A stretch of 64,000 nucleotides of DNA, from the NCBI GenBank assembly GCA_964199315.1, contig OZ116699.1, positions 18,848,001 through 18,912,000 of the forward strand. Direction: 5' to 3'. The DNA is from Orbicella franksi. Taxonomy: Eukaryota. Under the pieces are notes generated by a model, which was given only the letters and a program-made list of their open reading frames with translations, made no database searches and was not told where the DNA came from. Position 1 is the stretch's first letter; each line of letters starts with the position of its first letter. A program made the position numbers and the translations under genes. Of this stretch, positions 1 to 13,527 are shown piece by piece.

Positions 1-120
1 GGAGACTCGGCAAATTGAATTATATATTTTACTTTACAACTAAAATCGTCTCACTTTTTCATTGTGAATTGTTTTTTTGAGCTAGATGTGTATAATTGTC
101 TACGTTTGTGCTAAACTCAC

Positions 121-408
121 CAACAACCTGAAGTGTGTAAGTGTGATTTATACTGCCATATGGATTGGACACTATGCAAATGTATTTTCCTGAGTCGTTG
201 GGCACTAGATTTTTCAGTTTTAGGTACCAAATGGACGTGTTAAGATATGGGTCCATCCTTCGGCTGGGCATTTTCATTCCGTCCTTTAACCATGTGTATT
301 TGAGAGGTGGCGCTCCAGTCGCTTGACACCTCAATCTGATCGAATGTGATGCTGGCCATGCTCTAAATGCTCTTTTTAACAGATTTGGATCAGAAAAGGT
401 TGGTGCTC
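121..408 (-). CDS. Gene C exon: duplicated FGFR-type Ig2 (D2) domain
   Basis: Acceptor AG at 410-409 and donor GTGAGT at 120. The 288 nt translate as GAPTFSDPNLLKRAFRAWPASHSIRLRCQATGAPPLKYTWLKDG...YTLQVV. Confidence 0.88.
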
Positions 409-3400
409 CTAAACAAAGGACACAGAAACAAAATAATTAAGACCAATAAGTATGATGTGTAGCTTGACTCTACTTCTACAATCTTGTAGACATGGCCAGT
501 TGCACAGGTGGCGCAAAAGCTTAATTTTCGTTATAATTCAAATTCATTGGAATGCCAAAGGAAAACCCGTGGTTAATAGTTTGCAAGTATTTACTTTATT
601 TATTAAGGACAAGTCATTGATTAATGCGGGTTATGACCACTCTTCATGTGATATTGCCTGTTTTGAAAATGAAATGTAATAACCTTGTGGGAAAAGAAGA
701 AATATGAGAAAGTTTTGACTGATTGTACAGATGTTCATATGAGAAGCGTTAGACGTCTAGTTTCCTCAGCACTCAGGAATTACGAAAGTTGGCAATGGAT
801 CACGGAGAGTATACTCGTTTTCATCTGAACATCGGAAGAAAACCGATATTGCTTTGGTTTCTTATTTCTACACTGTGCAATGACATGCAAACCCAAAGAG
901 GTTAATGGCGTAGAAACCTCAAGGTACTTTTAAATATAATTCTACATTATACATACCGAATTGGTGATCATATTCACTTTTACTGTATAGTAGGATATAT
1001 TGCAGAGATATATTGCAGAGATATTTTCAGTATCAGATTAATTTGAGTAATAATATTTGTACATACAAACCTTCAACGGGGGCGCTGGGTTTCCCATCTT
1101 TGCTAAGGAAAGCACTACTGTAATCCTCGCCGACATGATTGCTCACATAGCAAGTGTAGAGTCCCAAATCATCCTCTTTGACATTAGCTATTCTCAACTC
1201 AACGCCGTAATGGTCCTTGACTCGGATAATCTTGTAAAAATGTGGGTCTATAATGCGGTATGATCCGTTCTCCAAGTCTTCACTAATTTTCTTTGTTGAT
1301 GTGACAGATTTGTCCCATTTCAGCCATCTGAAATCTGGAAGTGTTCCACTAACAAGCACAATGCATGTCATTGTTGCATTATCTCCAATCTGTACGGTTG
1401 TATTCTTTGGAGAGCTTTTTTGTAAGATGGGCCGTGATCGTGGTTTAGCTGTCGAGAAGATGATGGAAATCTTTTTTAAAAAAGAATATTTCAGCTGTAA
1501 CAAGACCAAAACTGCCAGTGTTGCCTGGTGCGGAGACTCGGCAAATTGAATTATATATTTTACTTTACAACTAAAATCGTCTCACTTTTTCATTGTGAAT
1601 TGTCTTTTTGAACTAGATGTGCATAATTGTCTACGTTTGTGCTAAACTCACCAACAACCTGAAGCGTGTAAGTGTGATTTATACTGCCATATGGATTGGA
1701 CACTATGCAAGTGTATTTCCCTGAGTCGTCGGGCACTAGATTTTTCAGTTTTAGGTACCAAATGGACGTGCTAAGATATGGGTCCATCCTTTGGCTGGGC
1801 ATTTTCTTTCCGTCCTTTAGCCATGTGTATTTGAGAGGTGGCACTCCAGTCGCTTGACACTTCAATCTGATCGAGTGTGATACTGGCCATGCTCTAAATG
1901 CTCTTTTTAACATACTTGGTTGAGAAAAGGTTGGTGCTCCTAAACAAGGACACATAAACAGAATAAATATGACCAACATTTTTGTCTCAATGTTATGATG
2001 TGATAGACATAGTCTTGTGAACGTGCCATTCGTGTAGTTGGTACAAAAGCTGACTTTGAATTATAATTGATTGAAATGCCAAAGGAAAAACCTGTAGTTA
2101 ATAGTTTGGAAGTAATTACCTTATTTCTCTTGAAAAGTCATTTAGTATTGCGGTGATGATCACTTTACGAAAATCAAATGTAATAAATTTGTGGAAAGAG
2201 AAGAAATGGGAGAATTCAATGCAACTGAGAAGAGAGAGACATCTATACTTTCCCTTTCAGCAATCGGGAATTGCTATAGTTCTCAATGCAACATAACGAA
2301 TGTAGTAATTTTCACCAGAACGTCGGAAGTAATCCGAAATTGCTGTGGTTTTATCTCGACATGTTATCTGATTTTGTTACACTGTGCAATCAAATGGCAA
2401 ACGATAAAAAACGTTCATGGTCTAAAAAGATAACTTAAAGGTACATTTTACTATAATTCTGAAGCCCTTCCATCAAGTGCGTTCGAAATCAAACATGCAA
2501 AATTGTATTTTTCTTGGAAATTCCGTTTGCAATGCACCATATCTTGAGATATTGGTAGCCTGGCAATTCCTGACCTAAGTTATAGGAAATCGAGCTCGCA
2601 CAAAATGAAAGTTTTATCTGATTTTGGATTTTTTTCTTTACCGTTTCCATTAAAATATAGATTTTTCAAGAAGAAACCTTATGTAAAAATTCTGCCTAAG
2701 TCCAGTATCTTGTGCAATTTTGACAAGGGAGGAATGGGTAAAAGTTCAGGTTTGGCCCTGGGAGAACGGTTTTTTAAAAATATCTTAAAGGGATGATTCA
2801 CGGCTCAACGCATGTGGAAGCTATAACGTTAGCACCTTTTGAAGTGAGAGAGTGTCTGAAAGTTAAGAGTTAGCGTACTTACGTCTACTTTGCATCTGGA
2901 TAGCTGTGAAAAAAAGGTGGGTGGGGAAGAAGGTTTGATTTTAACCGCAAATCTTTCCATTCTTCTGAGTCCACACACATGCTACTCCGATTTTAGTTAC
3001 CTTTATTTACCTAATACACTCGGTCTTTTTGCAATGTCCAGGATAGCCAAGACATTGTTAGACATGATCGCTTTTGCATCCAATACGTGCCGTTTATTTA
3101 AAACTTTACAAAAAAGATTTTGGTGTGCTGATTACATTCGCGGCATTTAATTCGCTGACTCGTGCCCAGTTGTCTTCTCACATCTGCATCGACTGGGAAC
3201 GAGTAAGGGATTTTCGAATGGCATGGTAACTCCGGCATGGGTCAAACCTGACTCGAAGACAAGGGCGACACAGGGACTTGGGAGGGTACAACCATAAATC
3301 ATAACTTTTTTCAAACCAGTTGAAGTTGATGGGACGCCTTGGTCCCAGCGTCTAGAATTCTTTGAACAGAGGGGTAGTGTAGTCCAGCAGCCTTGCTGAA

Positions 3401-4419
3401 GAGATTTCAGTTGTCCTCTCGTGAGGTGCTGACCTTTGCACGCCATATAATGAATATTCAGGAATATTGTTTGCACAACTCAACATCCCAACATATCCGG
3501 CACCTCAAATGTACATGGTTAAGCTTTCAAATCGCTGGATGTCTTTCAAACGGAAGACATCGAAAGCATGGAAGTGAAAATGATTTCCATGAGCTCAGGT
3601 TGAGCGCAATTATTAACATTATCATTGATTATGAGTTTATTTATGGAAGCTAGAGCAGTATCACGCAACCCCTGAGGGAGGGGGGGGGGTACTCAGAAAA
3701 GTTGGGTAGGGGTGTGCGGCCCACATCCCAAAAACCTTACCCTATTTATGACCAAAATCTGCAATTTTTGCTACTTTGTTTATGACCTGGCCAAAAATTC
3801 GATACTCTATTTATTAACTTTGAAGCTGGCACAGTTGCCCTAAACATAATTTATGATGGGATTTTGTTGACGGTCCTATCGATAATGATGAAAAAATAAG
3901 TTCCTTCTAAGAAACATACTCAATTCAAGACTAGAGTGCTAAAACCAAACCCTATTTAAGACCAAAATGGCCAAAATCGATACCCTATTTATGACCGAAA
4001 CGACTGAAAAATCCTAATCTTTGGGGCCGCACATACCTATGTAGCTCATATAAGGGAGTACCCCCCCGGGCACGAAATAAACCCAAACCCAGATCTAATC
4101 AACCCAATTAAGGAATTTCCACAGGAAAATATTTCATTATACACTCTGCTTTACAGTGAAGCTATAACCTCAACCATAGAGTTATTTGCAACGCATATTT
4201 TGGGTTAAATCTTCGCTTTCATTTAGTTTTTCTTGCCTGAGCTGCGCAATCGTAACTTAATTCTGAGCGTTATATGACTTGAATCGCTTAAACAATCATG
4301 CGGAACTTTCATCTACGTTTATTACTTAAAGTTTCTCAGTGGTACTTGCCTGAATACACTATCGAAGAGAAGAACCCTATGAGTAGAAGCATCGCCAACA
4401 GTTTCATGCCGGGGTCCAT
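121..4419 (-). CDS. FGFRL1-like Ig-domain gene C (partial, runs off the left edge): signal exon 4419-4350, Ig2 1939-1652, Ig3 1448-1071, second Ig2 408-121
   Basis: All exons are open in frame with phase-1 junctions and AG acceptors; donors are GT except a GC donor after the leader. The Ig exons carry FGFR D2 (C-x-A-x-G-x-P...TWLKDG...DSGKYxC..SNPYGSINHTYTL) and D3 (RSRPIL...GDNATMTC...YTCYVSN) motifs. The 3-prime end lies outside the window. Confidence 0.82.
1071..1448 (-). CDS. Gene C exon: FGFR-type Ig3 (D3) domain
   Basis: Acceptor ...ctcgacAG at 1450-1449 and donor GTTTGT at 1070. The 378 nt translate as AKPRSRPILQKSSPKNTTVQIGDNATMTC...DLGLYTCYVSNHVGEDYSSAFLS... Confidence 0.88.
1652..1939 (-). 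CDS. Gene C exon: FGFR-type Ig2 (D2) domain
   Basis: Acceptor ...ccttgtttAG at 1941-1940 and donor GTGAGT at 1651. 288 nt, phase 1-1, with both Ig cysteines and the W of TWLKDG intact. Confidence 0.88.
3670..4070. mobile_element. MITE-like non-autonomous DNA element with CCC..GGG G/C-run termini (hAT-like by 8-bp TSD)
   Basis: Starts ccctgagggagggggggggtact and ends gagtacccccccggg. Flanks cacgcaac / cacgaaat look like a degenerate 8-bp TSD. The internal sequence is homologous to 58138-58483. Confidence 0.75.
4350..4419 (-). CDS. Gene C leader exon (signal peptide MDPGMKLLAMLLLIGFFSSIVYS) with GC donor
   Basis: The minus strand reads ATG GAC CCC GGC ATG AAA CTG TTG GCG ATG CTT CTA CTC ATA GGG TTC TTC TCT TCG ATA GTG TAT TCA G|GCAAGT. 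Phase 1 matches the Ig2 acceptor at 1939. A pyrimidine-rich acceptor at 4482-4481 defines the exon start at 4480. Confidence 0.72.
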
Positions 4420-7812: not shown

Positions 7813-8003
7813 TTACGAGATCTCTATTCCTGGCTTTGTCGCTGTGATTCTCTTATGATACAGATGGCACCAGAGAAGGGCGATTGTTGTAATGACAGCC
7901 CAGGTGCTCAGTACACCTATAAACACACTGAGCGGTATCTTGGCCTCTCGGGATCTAGATAACACAGGTTTAGGCGATGGGTTGTCCAATGTAACGTTGG
8001 TTT
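7813..8003 (-). CDS. Gene B terminal exon: juxtamembrane, TM helix and 14-aa cytoplasmic tail
   Basis: Acceptor ttttttaattgtttaatcgtcAG at 8005-8004. Translates as ETNVTLDNPSPKPVLSRSREAKIPLSVFIGVLSTWAVITTIALLWCHLYHKRITATKPGIEIS*. Not present in the supplied ORF track. Confidence 0.8.
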
Positions 8004-11000
8004 CTGACGATTAAACAATTAAAAAAAGAAAAAAATGTGAAGATTTAAATTAATGTTGTTCGTACTTTTTTACCACTTATGTCATATTGTGTTGTCATAA
8101 GAACCACCCAATATAAATCATTTTTCTGCGCGTCATTGAGTACACACCGATGACTGATCACACTGAGTGGAAAAAAGATCTTTATATAAAAACAAAACTC
8201 AGCGGAAAATATGGAAAGTCAATGATACTTCTTGGCGACAAAAAAAGTGCAATTCTGCCAAAACTGATGAGGCGGTGTGCTTGCCATTGTGCAGTTTGCT
8301 AAGCGGCATTAACTTTGAAACTTGCATTCTTGCGTCGTATGTTGTTACTTTTTCCGCAGTCCATGTAACAGAACATCGTGGACGATTTGGTCGCTTTGTC
8401 CTATCCAAGTTCTTTATTTTCGCTTTGTACCCCCATCACCAGTCCGGGATCTAGCTATGCTAAATCATACGCTGTGGTCACCTCAGAATTGAGATGACCG
8501 CGATATCATGGCGGGATGTTGCCTTTGCCATTTCTTCGGTTGTACCCGGGTCAACTACCTATAGTTTTGGATATTTGGACGAGAAAGGAGATTCGTGCGT
8601 TGCTAAGATGGCCGTCAAAGACAAACTATAAAGATGCAACTTTTAATCGCATCAAACTATGAAGTGACCAAAAATACAGCCAAATAGAGCTGAAAGAGAA
8701 ACCAAATCCATGTATAGGTTCATCTTACCTGTAGAAAGCGAGGATTCTGTGTTGTGATGTTTCGCGAGGTAGTTTTTCTCAGGATTTGCTGTCGTGTCTG
8801 AAAGCGACTCTGTCGATCAGTAATATTAAAAGGATTAAAACAGTAGTATGCATTTCACAAAGGTATAGACAAACGTGTGGGTCTTCCCTGGAATGGATAA
8901 CTGTCTTTTGTTCAAGGAATGTTGCACTGGTAAGATCTTTTGAAGAGAGCCGCTTTCCAATGAAAAATGTTTTTCTGCATCAAATCCAGAGGTTCGGGAT
9001 GCCACCCGACCTCGTACAAAATTCTCTAGAATTGATCATTACTCACAGCTAGTCTCTCTACCTACGTGTATAAGGGACCAGCGGAATGAGCTGTGCAACC
9101 TTAAAAAAACGACAATGATGTACATGCATATGCTACTTGTTATCGGTAGGTCCGTAATCATATATAAAAATGCACATATGAGAAATTCAATTAAAAAAAG
9201 CGCACTGAAATGTAGGACAAAACAAAGTATCGAAAGTCAGAAACAAACTTAAGTTTGTGAGCTAAATAGTTGCGATGAACTGAGTAGTGTAAGCCTACCT
9301 GATTGAAAAGCACATCGCAAAACAAAACAAATGTTTTAGCTACGCATTTTTATGTTTATTGTACTAAACTCTGCGTTAATTTGTTGTGGAATTTATTTTG
9401 TTTTATAAGCAGTTTGCGAAAGTGAAACTGAACGAAATGAGGCGGAATGGTTTCAAAAATTTGTTGCTGAAACGGAAACAGCTAATATTCATACAACGAC
9501 AAACTGCGATAAAACAAAACGTCTGAAGAGTTTCAACAAACATTAGGAGCTAGTTACGTTCACTGAATTTATCCAGACTGGGCAAGAAAATTTATAAATG
9601 AGAATGATACAGTTGTAAAACAAAAAGGTCTTTTGGTTGTGAAAGAAGGAGCATGAGAAATTTATTTGAACAAGGTGAACTATGTTTTCTTTGGCCCAGT
9701 AAACACACAAACGCCGAAAAAAAAAGAACCATTTCGTTTAGACCAAACTAGCACTTTTGTTATGTGATCAAGATATCTTTCTACATAGAGGGTCAAGGAA
9801 CCAAAGGAAAATTACTAATTGTGAACAGCTCTTTTTTTTATTTAAGTTGAGAACGATGATCAGGCGGCCATTTTGCTCATTCGAATACGATAAGACCGTG
9901 CATTACACGTCGATATATTTGGTCTTTCAACGTCATCAAATTGCTAAACAGGCAAAAATATGCGGATGCTCTAAAAGACCCTATCAATTCCTATTTAGTA
10001 ATGGCAGGCGATTTTTATCCAAAACTTAGAACTAGACATGCTTTTTATATTGTTTGCGTTGTTTTTCCGACACGTATTCTGTTACCTTAAACACGATTAA
10101 GACTACCCAGAAAGAAACTATTTAAAAGAACAGGAAGCGTCGAATCTAATTTCCTTTTAAATTAAGCTGTCTATGGCCGGCAAAAGGAGTTAATTAAAGG
10201 GATATAGGGGGACTAAGATATTTACAATACCTCAATGACTTCTGTCACTTTCGATTAACGGTGATGTTATTGCATACGTTGGGTTGGAATGCAATGTCGT
10301 ATCATGATTCCAAAAAAACAGACAAGCTCACTGAGATGAACTGAATTAAGACAACTTCGTTCAGATGAATAAAGAGTAAAACACGTTTTTTTCGTTAACT
10401 ACTGATTTAAGTAGTCGAACGATTCTATCGTTCTCACAAAACGCCCAAAGTTTAACGAACTGGATGTAGTTCTTACCTTCTGACCCTTTCCACCTGTCCG
10501 TTTTCTCGCTTAAAAACGCACTCCTGTAGTCGGAACCAAGATGGTTACTAACGTAACACGTATACGGTCCAAAATCTTTGGGTGTGGCGTTTCTGATGTT
10601 CACTTTAACGCCGTACTTTCCTGCAACGTGAACCGTTTCATATTGCGCAGGATCAACAAGGGTGTACGAACCTCTTTCAAAGTCAAGTGAATTGGGGTAC
10701 GTGCTGGGGACATCATCCCACTTTACCCATCTAAAATCTGGAAGTGTTCCACTGACAAGGACGATGCAAGTCATCGAAGCGTTTTGTCCAAGCTGGACGC
10801 TGGTGTTTCTTGGGGAACCGCACTTCAAAATGGGCTTACTTCGAGATTTTTCTGTGTAAGAGAGAAACGTAGAACGATTGTAGACAGTTTATATTAACTA
10901 GATTGGAAAGGTGAACGCTCTGTTGAACCAAAAAAATGAGTTGGTCAAGAAGCAATCAACTACCAATCAAGAATGAGGTTTTGAAACTTTACGATCATTG

Positions 11001-13527
11001 AAAATCGTTTCCCGGGATCCTATCGTTGCCTTGAGTGAATGAACGATGACACCCCACTACCCCACGGGCTTACCCAAAATAGTAAATTTTTTGGACCAAA
11101 AAACTGAGTAACTCAGATTTTATTCCAACGTATTTAAGCTACCAAACGGTTCTAATGGCAGAACCTTCGGCTCAGATGTAGCGTCCACGAATATAGTGGA
11201 ATTCGATAAAATGACGACTGTAGCTAAACCAGCAAGAAGCATGCAGAGATGTTTTCAAAGAGGTAGTGAACATTACTGTTCTGGTATAGAACGTCCGATT
11301 ATGTCAGTTCTACAGTTTATATTTATCGGTTCTAATTATTTTTCAACCCAGTGCCTAACTTGGCAATCTCATTTATCCAGTTCTTTTCCACAAATGTTTC
11401 GATGATATCAAGACTCTTGACTTACCACCAGGATATGAAACCGATGCATCAGTGCACTTTGTACTACTTTACTATCCTAGATCTGATAGCATTTCTCTTT
11501 CTTTATTCTCCGATTACTTACCTACAACTCGTAGTGTATAAGTATGATTGATTGAGCCATAGGCGTTGGAAACTACACACGTGTATTTGCCCGAGTCCAG
11601 GGGTACCAAATCTTTAAGTTTTAGGTACCACATGTTTGTCTTAAGCCTCGGCTGTAATCGCCTGTGTATGGAAGGATCTCCGTCTTTTAACCACTGGAAT
11701 CTCAAAGGACTTGAGCCATTGGCTTTGCACTTTAGTCTAACAGTGTGACGTGCTGGCCACGCAATGAACGTTTGTTGCATTCTGATGGAGTCCACAAATC
11801 TGGGAGAAGCTGCACACGAAGAAAGTTGAATCAGGTGAAAATCAACTGTGTGAAGGACGGAATCACGGCGATGAAAGAAAACGTCGCCTACCGTGCAGAG
11901 TAACAGTTGCGAAAACATAAAATAATACACATTTATTATATGGCGGTGTCTCACAAGGACTGGGAACTACCGAATTCACGAATTTGATTGGCTGAAACCG
12001 ATATTGACCGCGGTCTAGATTTTCCCATCTAGACCGACATCTAGACCGGTTTCATTTTGCGTTGAAAAAGTAGCAAACTAAAATACAAAAATGTTCATCA
12101 TTTTCTTTTATTTAATTCTCAATCATTTATGGAAGTGCCAAAAAGCCTGAGGACAAAAAAAAAAGTAAAGAGGACGAGCAAATTTCGGCAGGTTTAAGTT
12201 AAGCTCATCGCCGTTCGCAAGCGAAATCTCAGCAAACCAGTTACGGATTAGAGTTTTCTTCTTTGCCATATAATAAACATCTTATTAATCGAGCTAAGTC
12301 GATCTGTATGGGAGAATCTTGACCTCGGTCGTGTGTACAGACCTCACTGCGTTCGGTCTGTACTCACGTCCTCGGTCAAGATTCTCCCATACAGACCTCC
12401 AGCTCGGTTAATAAGAGCTAACTAATAACTAGGAATTTGCCCCTCGTCCTCTGTCACTGTATGGTTACATCCCCTTTAACTAAGTCTGTCAGCACCGAAA
12501 ACGTAACGTAAAAGAAATGAGACAAAACAAAAGACAGAGTCGACGAACAACCAGAGCAATAGGAGCATTAGCAACGACGAGGGCAACGCCGAAGACGACG
12601 CCATGTCAAAAATTAAATTATATTTTACCAGCGAAATTCGCAACTATCTAGTTTAGTACGCCGATGGCTCTAAAAACGTCCTCAGGCTAAATATGCAATG
12701 ACAGCGTTCACTTCTAAATGGAAACACGAAAAATTAGCCGTCGTCGTTCGCGTTCCTCAGACTACGCAAACCTTAGTCATTTCACGTTCTTGATTTGCAG
12801 AGGACGGCAAAGAAATGTACAAAGATTTATGAGGCACGTGCACAGCTATTGTTTTGCTCATTAAGCCTTTTGTTTGGTGGCGATCTCGTTGCCGTCCTCG
12901 TCGCGGTTTGCTTAAGTTCCCTATGAGTGACTTACGAAAACGGGAGGTAGGCTTGGCAATACAACTTCGATTGTTATAGTTTGAAACTCCTTTCTAAATT
13001 TCAACCAGTTTGTCAGAAGCGGGAATTCTTTTTTTTCCACGACAGCTACTCTCTTATCTAATTTCCTAACGGCATGATTGATTCAATGACTGTGGGAATG
13101 TAACTGGGATTGGAGTGCCCCAAAACTGAAGTAAAGCAACGTAAAGCTTATCTCTCGAATGCACCTTCTCGTGCGTTGTACAATTCTGGGCGCTACACTC
13201 TGTTGATTATTCCGTCTACGACTGAAACGACATCGTGAAATGAGCAAATTTTGTATTATCTGGAGAACTGAACCGAGGCAGTAAATTTTCATTGACTTTA
13301 TTTCTCCGTGAACGCCGTTTCTCCATTTTAGCTGTCTACATTAAGATTAGCTGTTTGCGTTAAGATACAAACTGAGCTGTAATAGATTTCAAAGGCAGTG
13401 TAGGATAAGCAAGATATACAATATTTTTCCACTCCCTAATAACTAGACCAACCTTGAGCATCTCCAGAATTCGTGTTTGAAGAAGATGACGACGTTGTTG
13501 ACATGTAACTCATCGACGTAGAGCTCC
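7813..13527 (-). CDS. FGFRL1-like Ig-domain receptor gene B (leader exon not located): S/T-rich exon 13527-13453, Ig2 11809-11522, Ig3 10851-10477, stalk 8809-8729, TM plus short tail 8003-7813
   Basis: Five exons, all with phase-1 junctions and open frames. The terminal exon encodes TM IPLSVFIGVLSTWAVITTIALLWCHLY, similar to the gene A TM IPLAALIGVPIAVLILLIGTIVWCYFM, then stops. No kinase domain. Confidence 0.8.
8729..8809 (-). CDS. Gene B stalk exon (27 codons)
   Basis: Acceptor ...atattactgatcgacAG at 8811-8810 and donor GTAAGA at 8728. 81 nt, phase 1-1, open: ESLSDTTANPEKNYLAKHHNTESSLST. Confidence 0.68.
10477..10851 (-). CDS. Gene B exon: FGFR-type Ig3 domain
   Basis: Acceptor tttctctcttacacAG and donor GTAAGA at 10476. 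375 nt: EKSRSKPILKCGSPRNTSVQLGQNASMTC...DFGPYTCYVSNHLG. Confidence 0.88.
11522..11809 (-). CDS. Gene B exon: FGFR-type Ig2 domain
   Basis: Acceptor ctttcttcgtgtgcAG and donor GTAAGT at 11521. 288 nt: ASPRFVDSIRMQQTFIAWPARHTVRLKCKANGSSPLRFQWLKDG...DSGKYTCVVSNAYGSINHTYTLRVV. Confidence 0.88.
11955..12420. mobile_element. Non-autonomous repeat element ending in a long internal hairpin (MITE-like)
   Basis: 12280-12420 is an imperfect palindrome (ttattaatcgagct..ctgtatgggagaatcttgacc...ggtcaagattctcccatacag..agctcggttaataag). The architecture resembles 33581-33855. Confidence 0.6.
12560..12923. mobile_element. MITE with TAGG(G)AG..GCAACGACGA-type TIRs
   Basis: Starts taggagcattagcaacgacgagggcaacg and ends cgttgccgtcctcgtcgcggtttgcttaagttcccta. 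A second, inverted copy lies at 49578-49941. Confidence 0.75.
13453..13527 (-). CDS. Probable gene B Ser/Thr-rich exon upstream of Ig2
   Basis: Acceptor gtttctgttcttgatcttcAG and donor GTTGGT. 75 nt, phase 1-1, open: GSSTSMSYMSTTSSSSNTNSGDAQ. Confidence 0.55.

Follow-up and report, generated by a model that had tools for sequence, protein, structure and literature searches.

Does a receptor-like gene of the coral Orbicella franksi carry its fibroblast growth factor (FGF)-binding module several times in a row, or are its repeated exons decaying copies, mutually exclusive alternatives, or products of the assembly? The question is raised by the left end of a 64-kb window (GenBank assembly GCA_964199315.1, contig OZ116699.1, positions 18,848,001-18,912,000), where a pair of exons for two immunoglobulin (Ig) domains of the FGF receptor (FGFR) type, D2 and D3, is repeated within a gene referred to here as gene C. 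A damping role in FGF signalling is ascribed to kinase-less FGFR relatives of the FGFRL1 type, about whose biology little is known beyond the vertebrates. The window and its flanks were analysed, and the 497-Mb assembly to which the contig belongs was searched genome-wide. Coordinates refer to the window; negative values lie to the left of it, and the genome position is 18848000 plus the coordinate. We lean towards regarding gene C as a real, at least weakly expressed gene for a kinase-less FGFR-like protein with several D2-D3 cassettes.

Anatomy of Gene C

A repeat search aligned window positions 1-300 with 1532-1831 at 96% identity and a spacing of 1531 bp, with weaker collinear blocks reaching to approximately 943 and 2460, and BLASTN matched -119..943 to 1412..2460 (80% over 1101 nucleotides (nt)). 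The 1531-bp tandem repeat that an earlier sequence-only reading had proposed between positions 1 to ~950 and 1532 to ~2460 was thus recovered. Its breakpoint has to be corrected, as the boundary of the unit, placed in that reading about 120 bp after the D3 donor, lies by BLAST about 61 nt past it (window position 1010). The left edge of the window cuts the array, and another 3.3 kb of it lies to the left, ending at 18844726. Genome search and self-comparison together delimit a full array of 5.7 kb (-3274..2460) on the minus strand with a period of 1531 bp; both features worth looking for beyond the edge, further repeats and a single transmembrane (TM) exon, were found there.

The array contains four intact D2 exons (288 nt), three intact D3 exons (378 nt), and one D3 stub of 37 nt (Table 1). 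All seven full-length exons are open, have intact splice sites, and are of phase 1-1. This includes the two D2 copies within the window, D2(c) and D2(d), which had been described as intact 288-nt phase 1-1 exons and indeed show open frames, AG acceptors, and GTGAGT donors; a polypyrimidine tract and AG precede, and GT follows, each of D2(c), D3(c), and D2(d). Identity between copies is uneven, with 96-100% for the D2 exon, the D2-D3 intron, and D3, and 62-83% for the intron upstream of D2.

The repeated exons are flanked by one start and one end. In 94 kb, a single homologue of the signal-peptide (SP) exon was detected, upstream of the array, which agrees with the earlier statement that no leader lies between the copies. 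This exon and its GC donor are conserved at a paralogous locus elsewhere in the genome, in Oculina patagonica, and at the corresponding locus of a related coral (contig L024). The downstream TM/tail exon encodes a TM helix and a 41-residue tail ending in NEYVFLPQS, which holds a YxxPhi-type motif, followed by the stop codon. Joining all full exons yields an open frame of 863 amino acids (aa); the two-cassette (545 aa) and single-cassette (323 aa) versions are open as well, and every combination of exons keeps the frame. Because the exons are symmetric, their U2-type splice sites intact, and the introns of ordinary length, the default mRNA should include all cassette exons. The predicted protein would have the order SP-D2-D3-D2-D2-D3-D2-D3-TM. 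An interpretation as one gene with the FGF-binding module in tandem fits the anatomy, the splice logic, and the precedents discussed below.

Table 1: Features of gene C in transcriptional order (window coordinates; genome positions in brackets).
Feature	Coordinates	Strand	Remarks
Signal-peptide exon	4350..4419	-	23 codons plus 1 base, phase 1; donor CAG GCAAGT (GC-AG intron)
Intron 1, 2.4 kb	1940..4349	-	Final ~520 nt (1940-2460) correspond, with divergence, to the inter-cassette introns
D2(d) exon, 288 nt, phase 1-1, I-set Ig	1652..1939	-	Splice sites, open frame, FGFR1 alignment
D2-D3 intron, 203 nt	1449..1651	-	Its equivalent in cassette b gave the sole splice joint in RNA reads, not assignable to gene C
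D3(c) exon, 378 nt, phase 1-1	1071..1448	-	100% identical to D3(b) outside the window
Inter-cassette intron, 662 nt	409..1070	-	From D3(c) donor to D2(c) acceptor; spanned by contig L019
D2(c) exon, 288 nt, phase 1-1	121..408	-	Splice sites, open frame
Start of D2(c)-D3 intron	1..120	-	Window ends here
D3 stub, 37 nt	-82..-118 (18847881-18847918)	-	Start of a D3 exon with acceptor
D2(b) exon	-814..-1101 (18846899-18847186)	-	Position 5 in array order
D3(b) exon	-1305..-1682 (18846318-18846695)	-	Position 6 in array order
D2(a) exon	-2345..-2632 (18845368-18845655)	-	Position 7 in array order
D3(a) exon	-2836..-3213 (18844787-18845164)	-	Position 8 in array order
TM/tail exon	-3735..-3970 (18844030-18844265)	-	Downstream of the array; stop codon included

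The D3 stub is joined to the equivalent of inter-cassette intron position 836, corresponding to a non-homologous deletion of 575 bp whose junction (18847881/18847882) shows 1 nt of microhomology. A very high-copy repeat, probably a small transposable element, occupies 18847201-18847600 and is inserted only in the intron upstream of D2(b); its word depth was 7,000-46,000 in the contig runs, with many inverted or partial joints. A (GTCT)n microsatellite lies at 18844300-18844362 (~-3638..-3700), immediately 5′ of the polypyrimidine tract of the TM-exon acceptor.

Domain Identity and Family Membership

By alignment, the array exons encode FGFR-type D2 and D3 Ig domains. Residues 1-95 of D2(d) align end to end with residues 152-248 of FGFR1 (E value 2.5e-28), and the exon also aligns with D2 of the solved structures of FGFR2-4; residues 2-123 of D3(c) align in single stretches with D3 of FGFR4, FGFR2, FGFR1, and FGFR3 (E values 1e-11 to 1e-8). 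The other FGFR hallmarks, a tyrosine kinase and an N-terminal D1 with acid box, are absent from gene C. Between the SP exon and D2(d), tblastn yielded no Ig-like match, although it recovers the D1 of the neighbouring kinase-bearing FGFR (gene D), and the open reading frames listed for intron 1 include nothing Ig-like. Likewise, no kinase motifs occur between the TM exon of gene C and the next gene in a motif scan that does detect those of gene D.

Gene C shares with the FGFRL1-type plan the FGFR-like ectodomain, the TM segment, the short non-kinase tail, phase-1 introns, separate exons for the individual Ig domains, and a terminal exon for both TM and tail. It departs from that plan in the ectodomain, where D1, D2, and D3 are expected once each; in gene C, D1 is missing, D2 is present as four exons, and D3 as three. 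Without D1 and kinase and with repeated D2 and D3, its layout is neither that of a canonical FGFR nor that of FGFRL1, as had been claimed. These features suggest a kinase-less, membrane-anchored coral FGFR derivative of the kind that RefSeq labels "FGFR-like 1". Since the nearest relative of its Ig exons is gene D (88% aa identity for D2 and 79% for D3), gene C may well derive from the FGFRs of its own lineage and not be orthologous to bilaterian FGFRL1. A matching exon plan, in which every Ig domain has its own exon, the introns are in phase 1, and the final exon covers TM and tail, has been published for FGFRL1 of Nematostella and human (PMC2754479), and the Nematostella "FGFRL1" groups with Nematostella's own FGFRb (Bertrand et al. 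2009, PMC2754479).

Transcription

RNA reads of run X24 and others were aligned to the locus in a single experiment; those of run X22 fell only on a repeat. Run X24 gave approximately 11x coverage over the D2 exons and at most 1x over the D3 exons of gene C, and the sole splice joint in the RNA reads connected D2(b) to D3(b) (5 reads). Reading this depth and this joint as expression of gene C was rejected. Wherever a variant is listed, the base in the reads covering the D2 exons is that of gene D, of the paralogous locus, or of both, and at offsets 70 and 82 the read bases differ from all four gene-C copies. As the reads carry paralogue bases, the D2(b)-D3(b) joint cannot be credited to gene C and is regarded as cross-mapped from gene D or the paralogous locus. 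Most of the RNA reads that map to the D2 exons of gene C probably stem from gene D. Gene D and the paralogous locus are both expressed. Bases specific to the paralogous locus are present in the RNA reads of run X24.

Words that distinguish D3(c) gave a different line of evidence. No paralogue shares more than 88% of the 31-mers of this exon, and exact D3(c) 31-mers were present at a fraction of 0.41-0.62 in the polyadenylated (polyA) RNA runs of one study and of 0.27-0.38 in the runs of other studies. Because these words are found in polyA RNA, some transcription of a D3(c)-type exon is likely. The proposal that gene C encodes the module in tandem is partly supported, by a gene structure with a single SP exon, the cassettes, and a single TM exon, all in open frames; no read joined position 1071 to 408. 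Protein searches returned no transcript-derived protein with a D3-D2 junction of the gene C type, a weak negative given the limits on search length and words.

Array History, Selection, and the Case for Decay

The 1.15-Mb contig L024 belongs to a related coral and shows collinearity with the window all the way from the TM exon of gene B, a neighbour described below, through gene C to far downstream, and dS between the two species is approximately 0.2. Its gene C locus reads SP exon, D2 stub (72 nt), D3, 657-nt intron, D2, D3 stub (75 nt), and TM exon. Two copies of the SP-exon region occur on L024 (5140-5205 and 6399-6470), of which the upstream copy is without the GC donor. Since L024 retains a broken two-cassette version, a D2-D3-D2-D3 state predates the split of the two corals, with different pieces lost in each lineage thereafter.

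The further expansion is recent, because blocks of the array are 98.6-100% identical and D2(b) is a hybrid. Alignment of the four units showed that unit c is nearly identical to unit a, while unit b equals unit d from the middle of D2 through D3 and has an upstream intron of the inter-cassette type. D2(b) is thus a hybrid exon, a mark left by unequal crossing-over after cassettes had been misaligned. Identity between -2872..-776 and -119..1976 amounts to 98.6%, whereas divergence is far greater (13-38%) in D3(a) over its 3′ half and in the intron that precedes D2(d); such high local divergence beside near-identity indicates that old divergence was partly erased by conversion. We propose an ancestral plan of SP exon, D2 exon, D3 exon, and TM/short-tail exon, in which the D2-D3 exon pair would have been amplified in place by unequal crossing-over, and cassette number would be easily altered by recombination.

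The same history could also describe an array on its way out. According to this main rival explanation, which we consider unlikely but take most seriously, the array is real DNA but a young, unconstrained, or non-functional duplicate in decay, and its transcripts are noise. Comparison between species speaks for constraint. The ratio of non-synonymous to synonymous substitution rates (ω) is 0.33 (P = 0.004) for the D3 of L024 versus D3(c) and 0.24 (P = 0.001) for the D2 of L024 versus D2(c), which points to purifying selection on the internal exons. In addition, the seven open full-length exons with intact splice sites, the frame open over 863 aa, and the occurrence of D3(c) words across several polyA RNA runs that come from different studies are not what decay would predict.

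Several observations nevertheless weigh against a functional multi-cassette gene. Within the array, ω is 0.76-0.96 for D2(d) versus the other copies and for D3(a) versus D3(c), a value of 0.3 is rejected (P = 0.02), and ω comes to approximately 0.9 for D2(d) as well as for D3(a) over its 3′ half, so that the array copies look relaxed among themselves. Gene conversion from a constrained true FGFR could moreover mimic or inflate the constraint seen between species. One D3 has been deleted by the 575-bp event, and the high-copy repeat sits in one intron. The related-coral orthologue has lost most of one D2 and one D3 and has a possible frameshift in its TM exon; together with the deleted D3, this raises the odds of a decaying or unconstrained array. 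At the paralogous locus, a CAG-to-TAG change creates a stop just before the TM segment. Finally, the RNA reads on the D2 exons bear paralogue bases, there were hardly any gene-C-specific reads in two polyA runs, and no read or contig joined a D3 to the next D2 or to the TM exon, at a depth far too low to expect such a joint.

Joint or Alternative Use of the Cassettes

The repeated cassettes had also been suggested to be mutually exclusive alternatives, so that each mRNA would receive one D2-D3 pair by mutually exclusive or skipping-type splicing and the isoforms would differ in their ligand-binding modules. We judge this improbable. Vertebrate FGFR genes do use mutually exclusive IIIb and IIIc exons. 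The single-cassette products of gene C would be in frame (323 aa), the Oculina orthologues have a single cassette, and there are 4-12 non-synonymous differences per pair of D2 exons and 16 between D3(a) and D3(c). However, three of the four usual mechanistic prerequisites are absent: an inter-cassette intron of 662 nt imposes no steric block, the cassette and inter-cassette introns are U2-type GT-AG introns without U2/U12 incompatibility, and joint inclusion keeps the frame, so that nonsense-mediated decay would not filter it. There is also no leader exon between cassettes, the identical D3(b) and D3(c) offer no diversity, and gene models of Porites and Hydractinia include comparable cassettes in tandem.

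A promoter or leader per cassette, as in the protocadherins, was rejected for gene C and for the paralogous locus, each of which has a single SP exon outside the repeated unit.

Validity of the Assembly

Near-identical tandem blocks can arise when haplotypes or repeat reads are placed end to end, in which case the true number of cassettes would be lower. The 98.6% identity of the two large blocks is within the range of coral heterozygosity, and the DNA contigs of run X3 are interrupted at D3(a) and at the deletion junction, although such holes in themselves prove nothing. Among the pieces listed for the DNA contigs of run X3 and the "RNA" contigs of run X15, none bridges the junction at 18847881/18847882.

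Independent contigs support the tandem arrangement. The 1998-bp contig L019 (JGI 3300010394) extends from D2 across D3 and all 662 nt of the inter-cassette intron and on into the D2 that follows, and is ~99% identical to gene C in introns and D3; contig L020 (ENA) covers D2-D3 and part of the inter-cassette intron. Their introns and D3 are 99% gene C-like, but their D2 exons are not. The upstream D2 is 99.4% (L019:261-426) and 99.1% (L020:188-406) identical to the D2 of gene D, and the downstream D2 of L019 (1670-1957) is 97.6-98.3% identical to D2 of the paralogous locus. This might be explained either by gene conversion between paralogues that differs between individuals or by chimeric short-read assembly, and both contigs were used as support for the continuity of introns and D3 only. 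As the D3-to-D2 adjacency is present in L019 and also in the long-read contig L024 of the related coral, the compared sequences indicate that it is not an assembly artefact.

The deletion junction and the features of the adjoining intron are more easily explained by real events at the locus than by a fault of the assembler. As expected of a true deletion, the junction is non-homologous, with 1 nt of microhomology, and the intron beside it carries a repeat insertion of its own and belongs to the inter-cassette type, not to that of intron 1. The assembly contains no Ns here, and at most the copy number (four versus two or three) is at risk, not the tandem arrangement. We therefore consider an artefact very improbable.

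Neighbouring and Paralogous Genes

Genome-wide, D3 matches at E ≤ 1e-20 comprise eight exons, three in gene C, one each in genes D and B, and three at the paralogous locus. This locus (18590395-18606322) lies ~250 kb to the left of the window on the strand opposite to gene C and consists of one SP exon, three 5023-bp units (99.6-99.8% identical, each with D2 and D3), and one TM exon that is 87% identical to that of gene C. With its premature stop, it is predicted to encode a secreted (D2-D3)x3 protein or to be a pseudogene.

Gene D, at approximately -19600..-26000 (18822000-18828400), is a complete FGFR with D1, D2, D3, TM, and a tyrosine kinase carrying the motifs GEGAFGLV, HRDLAARN, and DFGLAR. 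On the minus strand of the window, gene B (7816-7989, 10505-10849, and 11523-11807) is a single-cassette kinase-less gene with D2, D3, TM, and a short tail, and its Ig exons are 58-60% identical to those of gene C. Transcript-derived proteins from Logan, for example, P0274 (348 aa, 36 member sequences), contain a 34-residue TM-spanning stretch identical to that of gene B, and therefore the gene B type is expressed as SP-D2-D3-TM. Gene A (28968-30267, minus strand) has a more distant D2-D3 pair, 37% and 32% identical to those of gene C, and is a member of the same tandem FGFR-like cluster.

Possible Function and Significance

If gene C is translated with all cassettes, the putative protein would bind FGF and heparan sulphate via several D2-D3 modules without signalling and could thus act as a multivalent FGF trap or decoy on the cell surface. 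Two to four D2-D3 modules in a single receptor would lend themselves naturally to multivalent trapping of ligand; such a layout was not described in the FGFR/FGFRL1 literature searched. A recurrent modulation of FGF signalling in cnidarians is suggested by the second locus and by the Porites lutea and Hydractinia models, which are filed under "hemicentin-like" and "titin-like" names; that gene C adjoins true FGFRs and lies near an FGF8-Sprouty-FGFR cluster may point in the same direction.

A more far-reaching idea, which we offer as speculation with little expectation that it holds in full, is that corals repeatedly and independently evolved membrane-anchored or secreted kinase-less multivalent (D2-D3)n FGF traps, which would be reshuffled from one individual to the next in D2 sequence and in the number of modules, through unequal crossing-over and through gene conversion among FGFR paralogues, resulting in a tunable, polymorphic brake on FGF signalling. 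If the variability of D2 were adaptive, the genes could represent a family of diversified recognition receptors built from the ligand-binding module of FGFR. The locus is in any case a clean example of exon-pair amplification enabled by symmetric phase-1 exons and, if the array is decaying, a record of how fast such duplicates arise and break.

Comparison with Known Systems

The closest counterparts of gene C are the cnidarian genes of the FGFRL1 type (Nematostella FGFRL1, PMC2754479; Oculina XP_078358972.1 and XP_078358951.1), which share with it an FGFR-type Ig ectodomain, a single TM, a short tail, and no kinase, as well as one Ig domain per exon, phase-1 introns, a last exon with TM and tail, and linkage to FGFR genes. 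In Oculina patagonica, single-cassette genes named "FGFR-like 1" in RefSeq have homologous SP and TM/tail exons and the same ...PRNEYVFLPQ end. Canonical FGFRL1 has D1-D2-D3 once, whereas gene C lacks D1 and repeats D2-D3; a histidine-rich stretch is also absent from its tail.

Tandem D2-D3 cassettes in kinase-less proteins are found in computed RefSeq gene models of two other cnidarians; no paper describing tandem D2-D3 FGFR-like proteins, these models included, was found in literature searches. In Porites lutea ("hemicentin-2-like" XP_073239420.1 and XP_073239419.1), tandem D2-D3, TM, and a short tail are combined without a kinase as in gene C, and XP_073239420.1 has three near-identical D2-D3 pairs and a tail ending in NEYVVVPDFN, which resembles that of gene C; in contrast to gene C, the N-terminus is Delta/DSL-like. 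The "titin-like" XP_057305894.1 of Hydractinia symbiolongicarpus has the order Ig-D2-D3-D2-D3-TM and adjoins a kinase-bearing FGFR, but differs from gene C by an extra N-terminal Ig domain and by only 36-41% aa identity. Because the periods differ and the identity to Hydractinia is this low, the two tandems are best explained as independent duplications. As computed predictions, both models are cases in which an annotation pipeline has strung such cassettes together in tandem.

FGFR ectodomain exons appear to be widely shuffled in corals. Among the protein models, FGFR-type D1-D2-D3 is joined to TIR instead of a kinase in Stylophora pistillata (P0030 and P0283) and Montipora foliosa (P0278) and to discoidin (F5/8 type C) domains in Acropora muricata (P0267), and D1-D2-D3 pieces are repeated in Acropora palmata (P0264).

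The IIIb/IIIc exons of vertebrate FGFR1-3 resemble gene C in that ligand-binding exon sequence is duplicated and ligand specificity might be diversified. In FGFR1-3, however, only the second half of D3 is duplicated and its use is strictly alternative, whereas in gene C the repeats consist of whole D2-D3 exon pairs, the introns are normal, and the frame is kept, and joint inclusion of the cassettes is therefore the default expectation.

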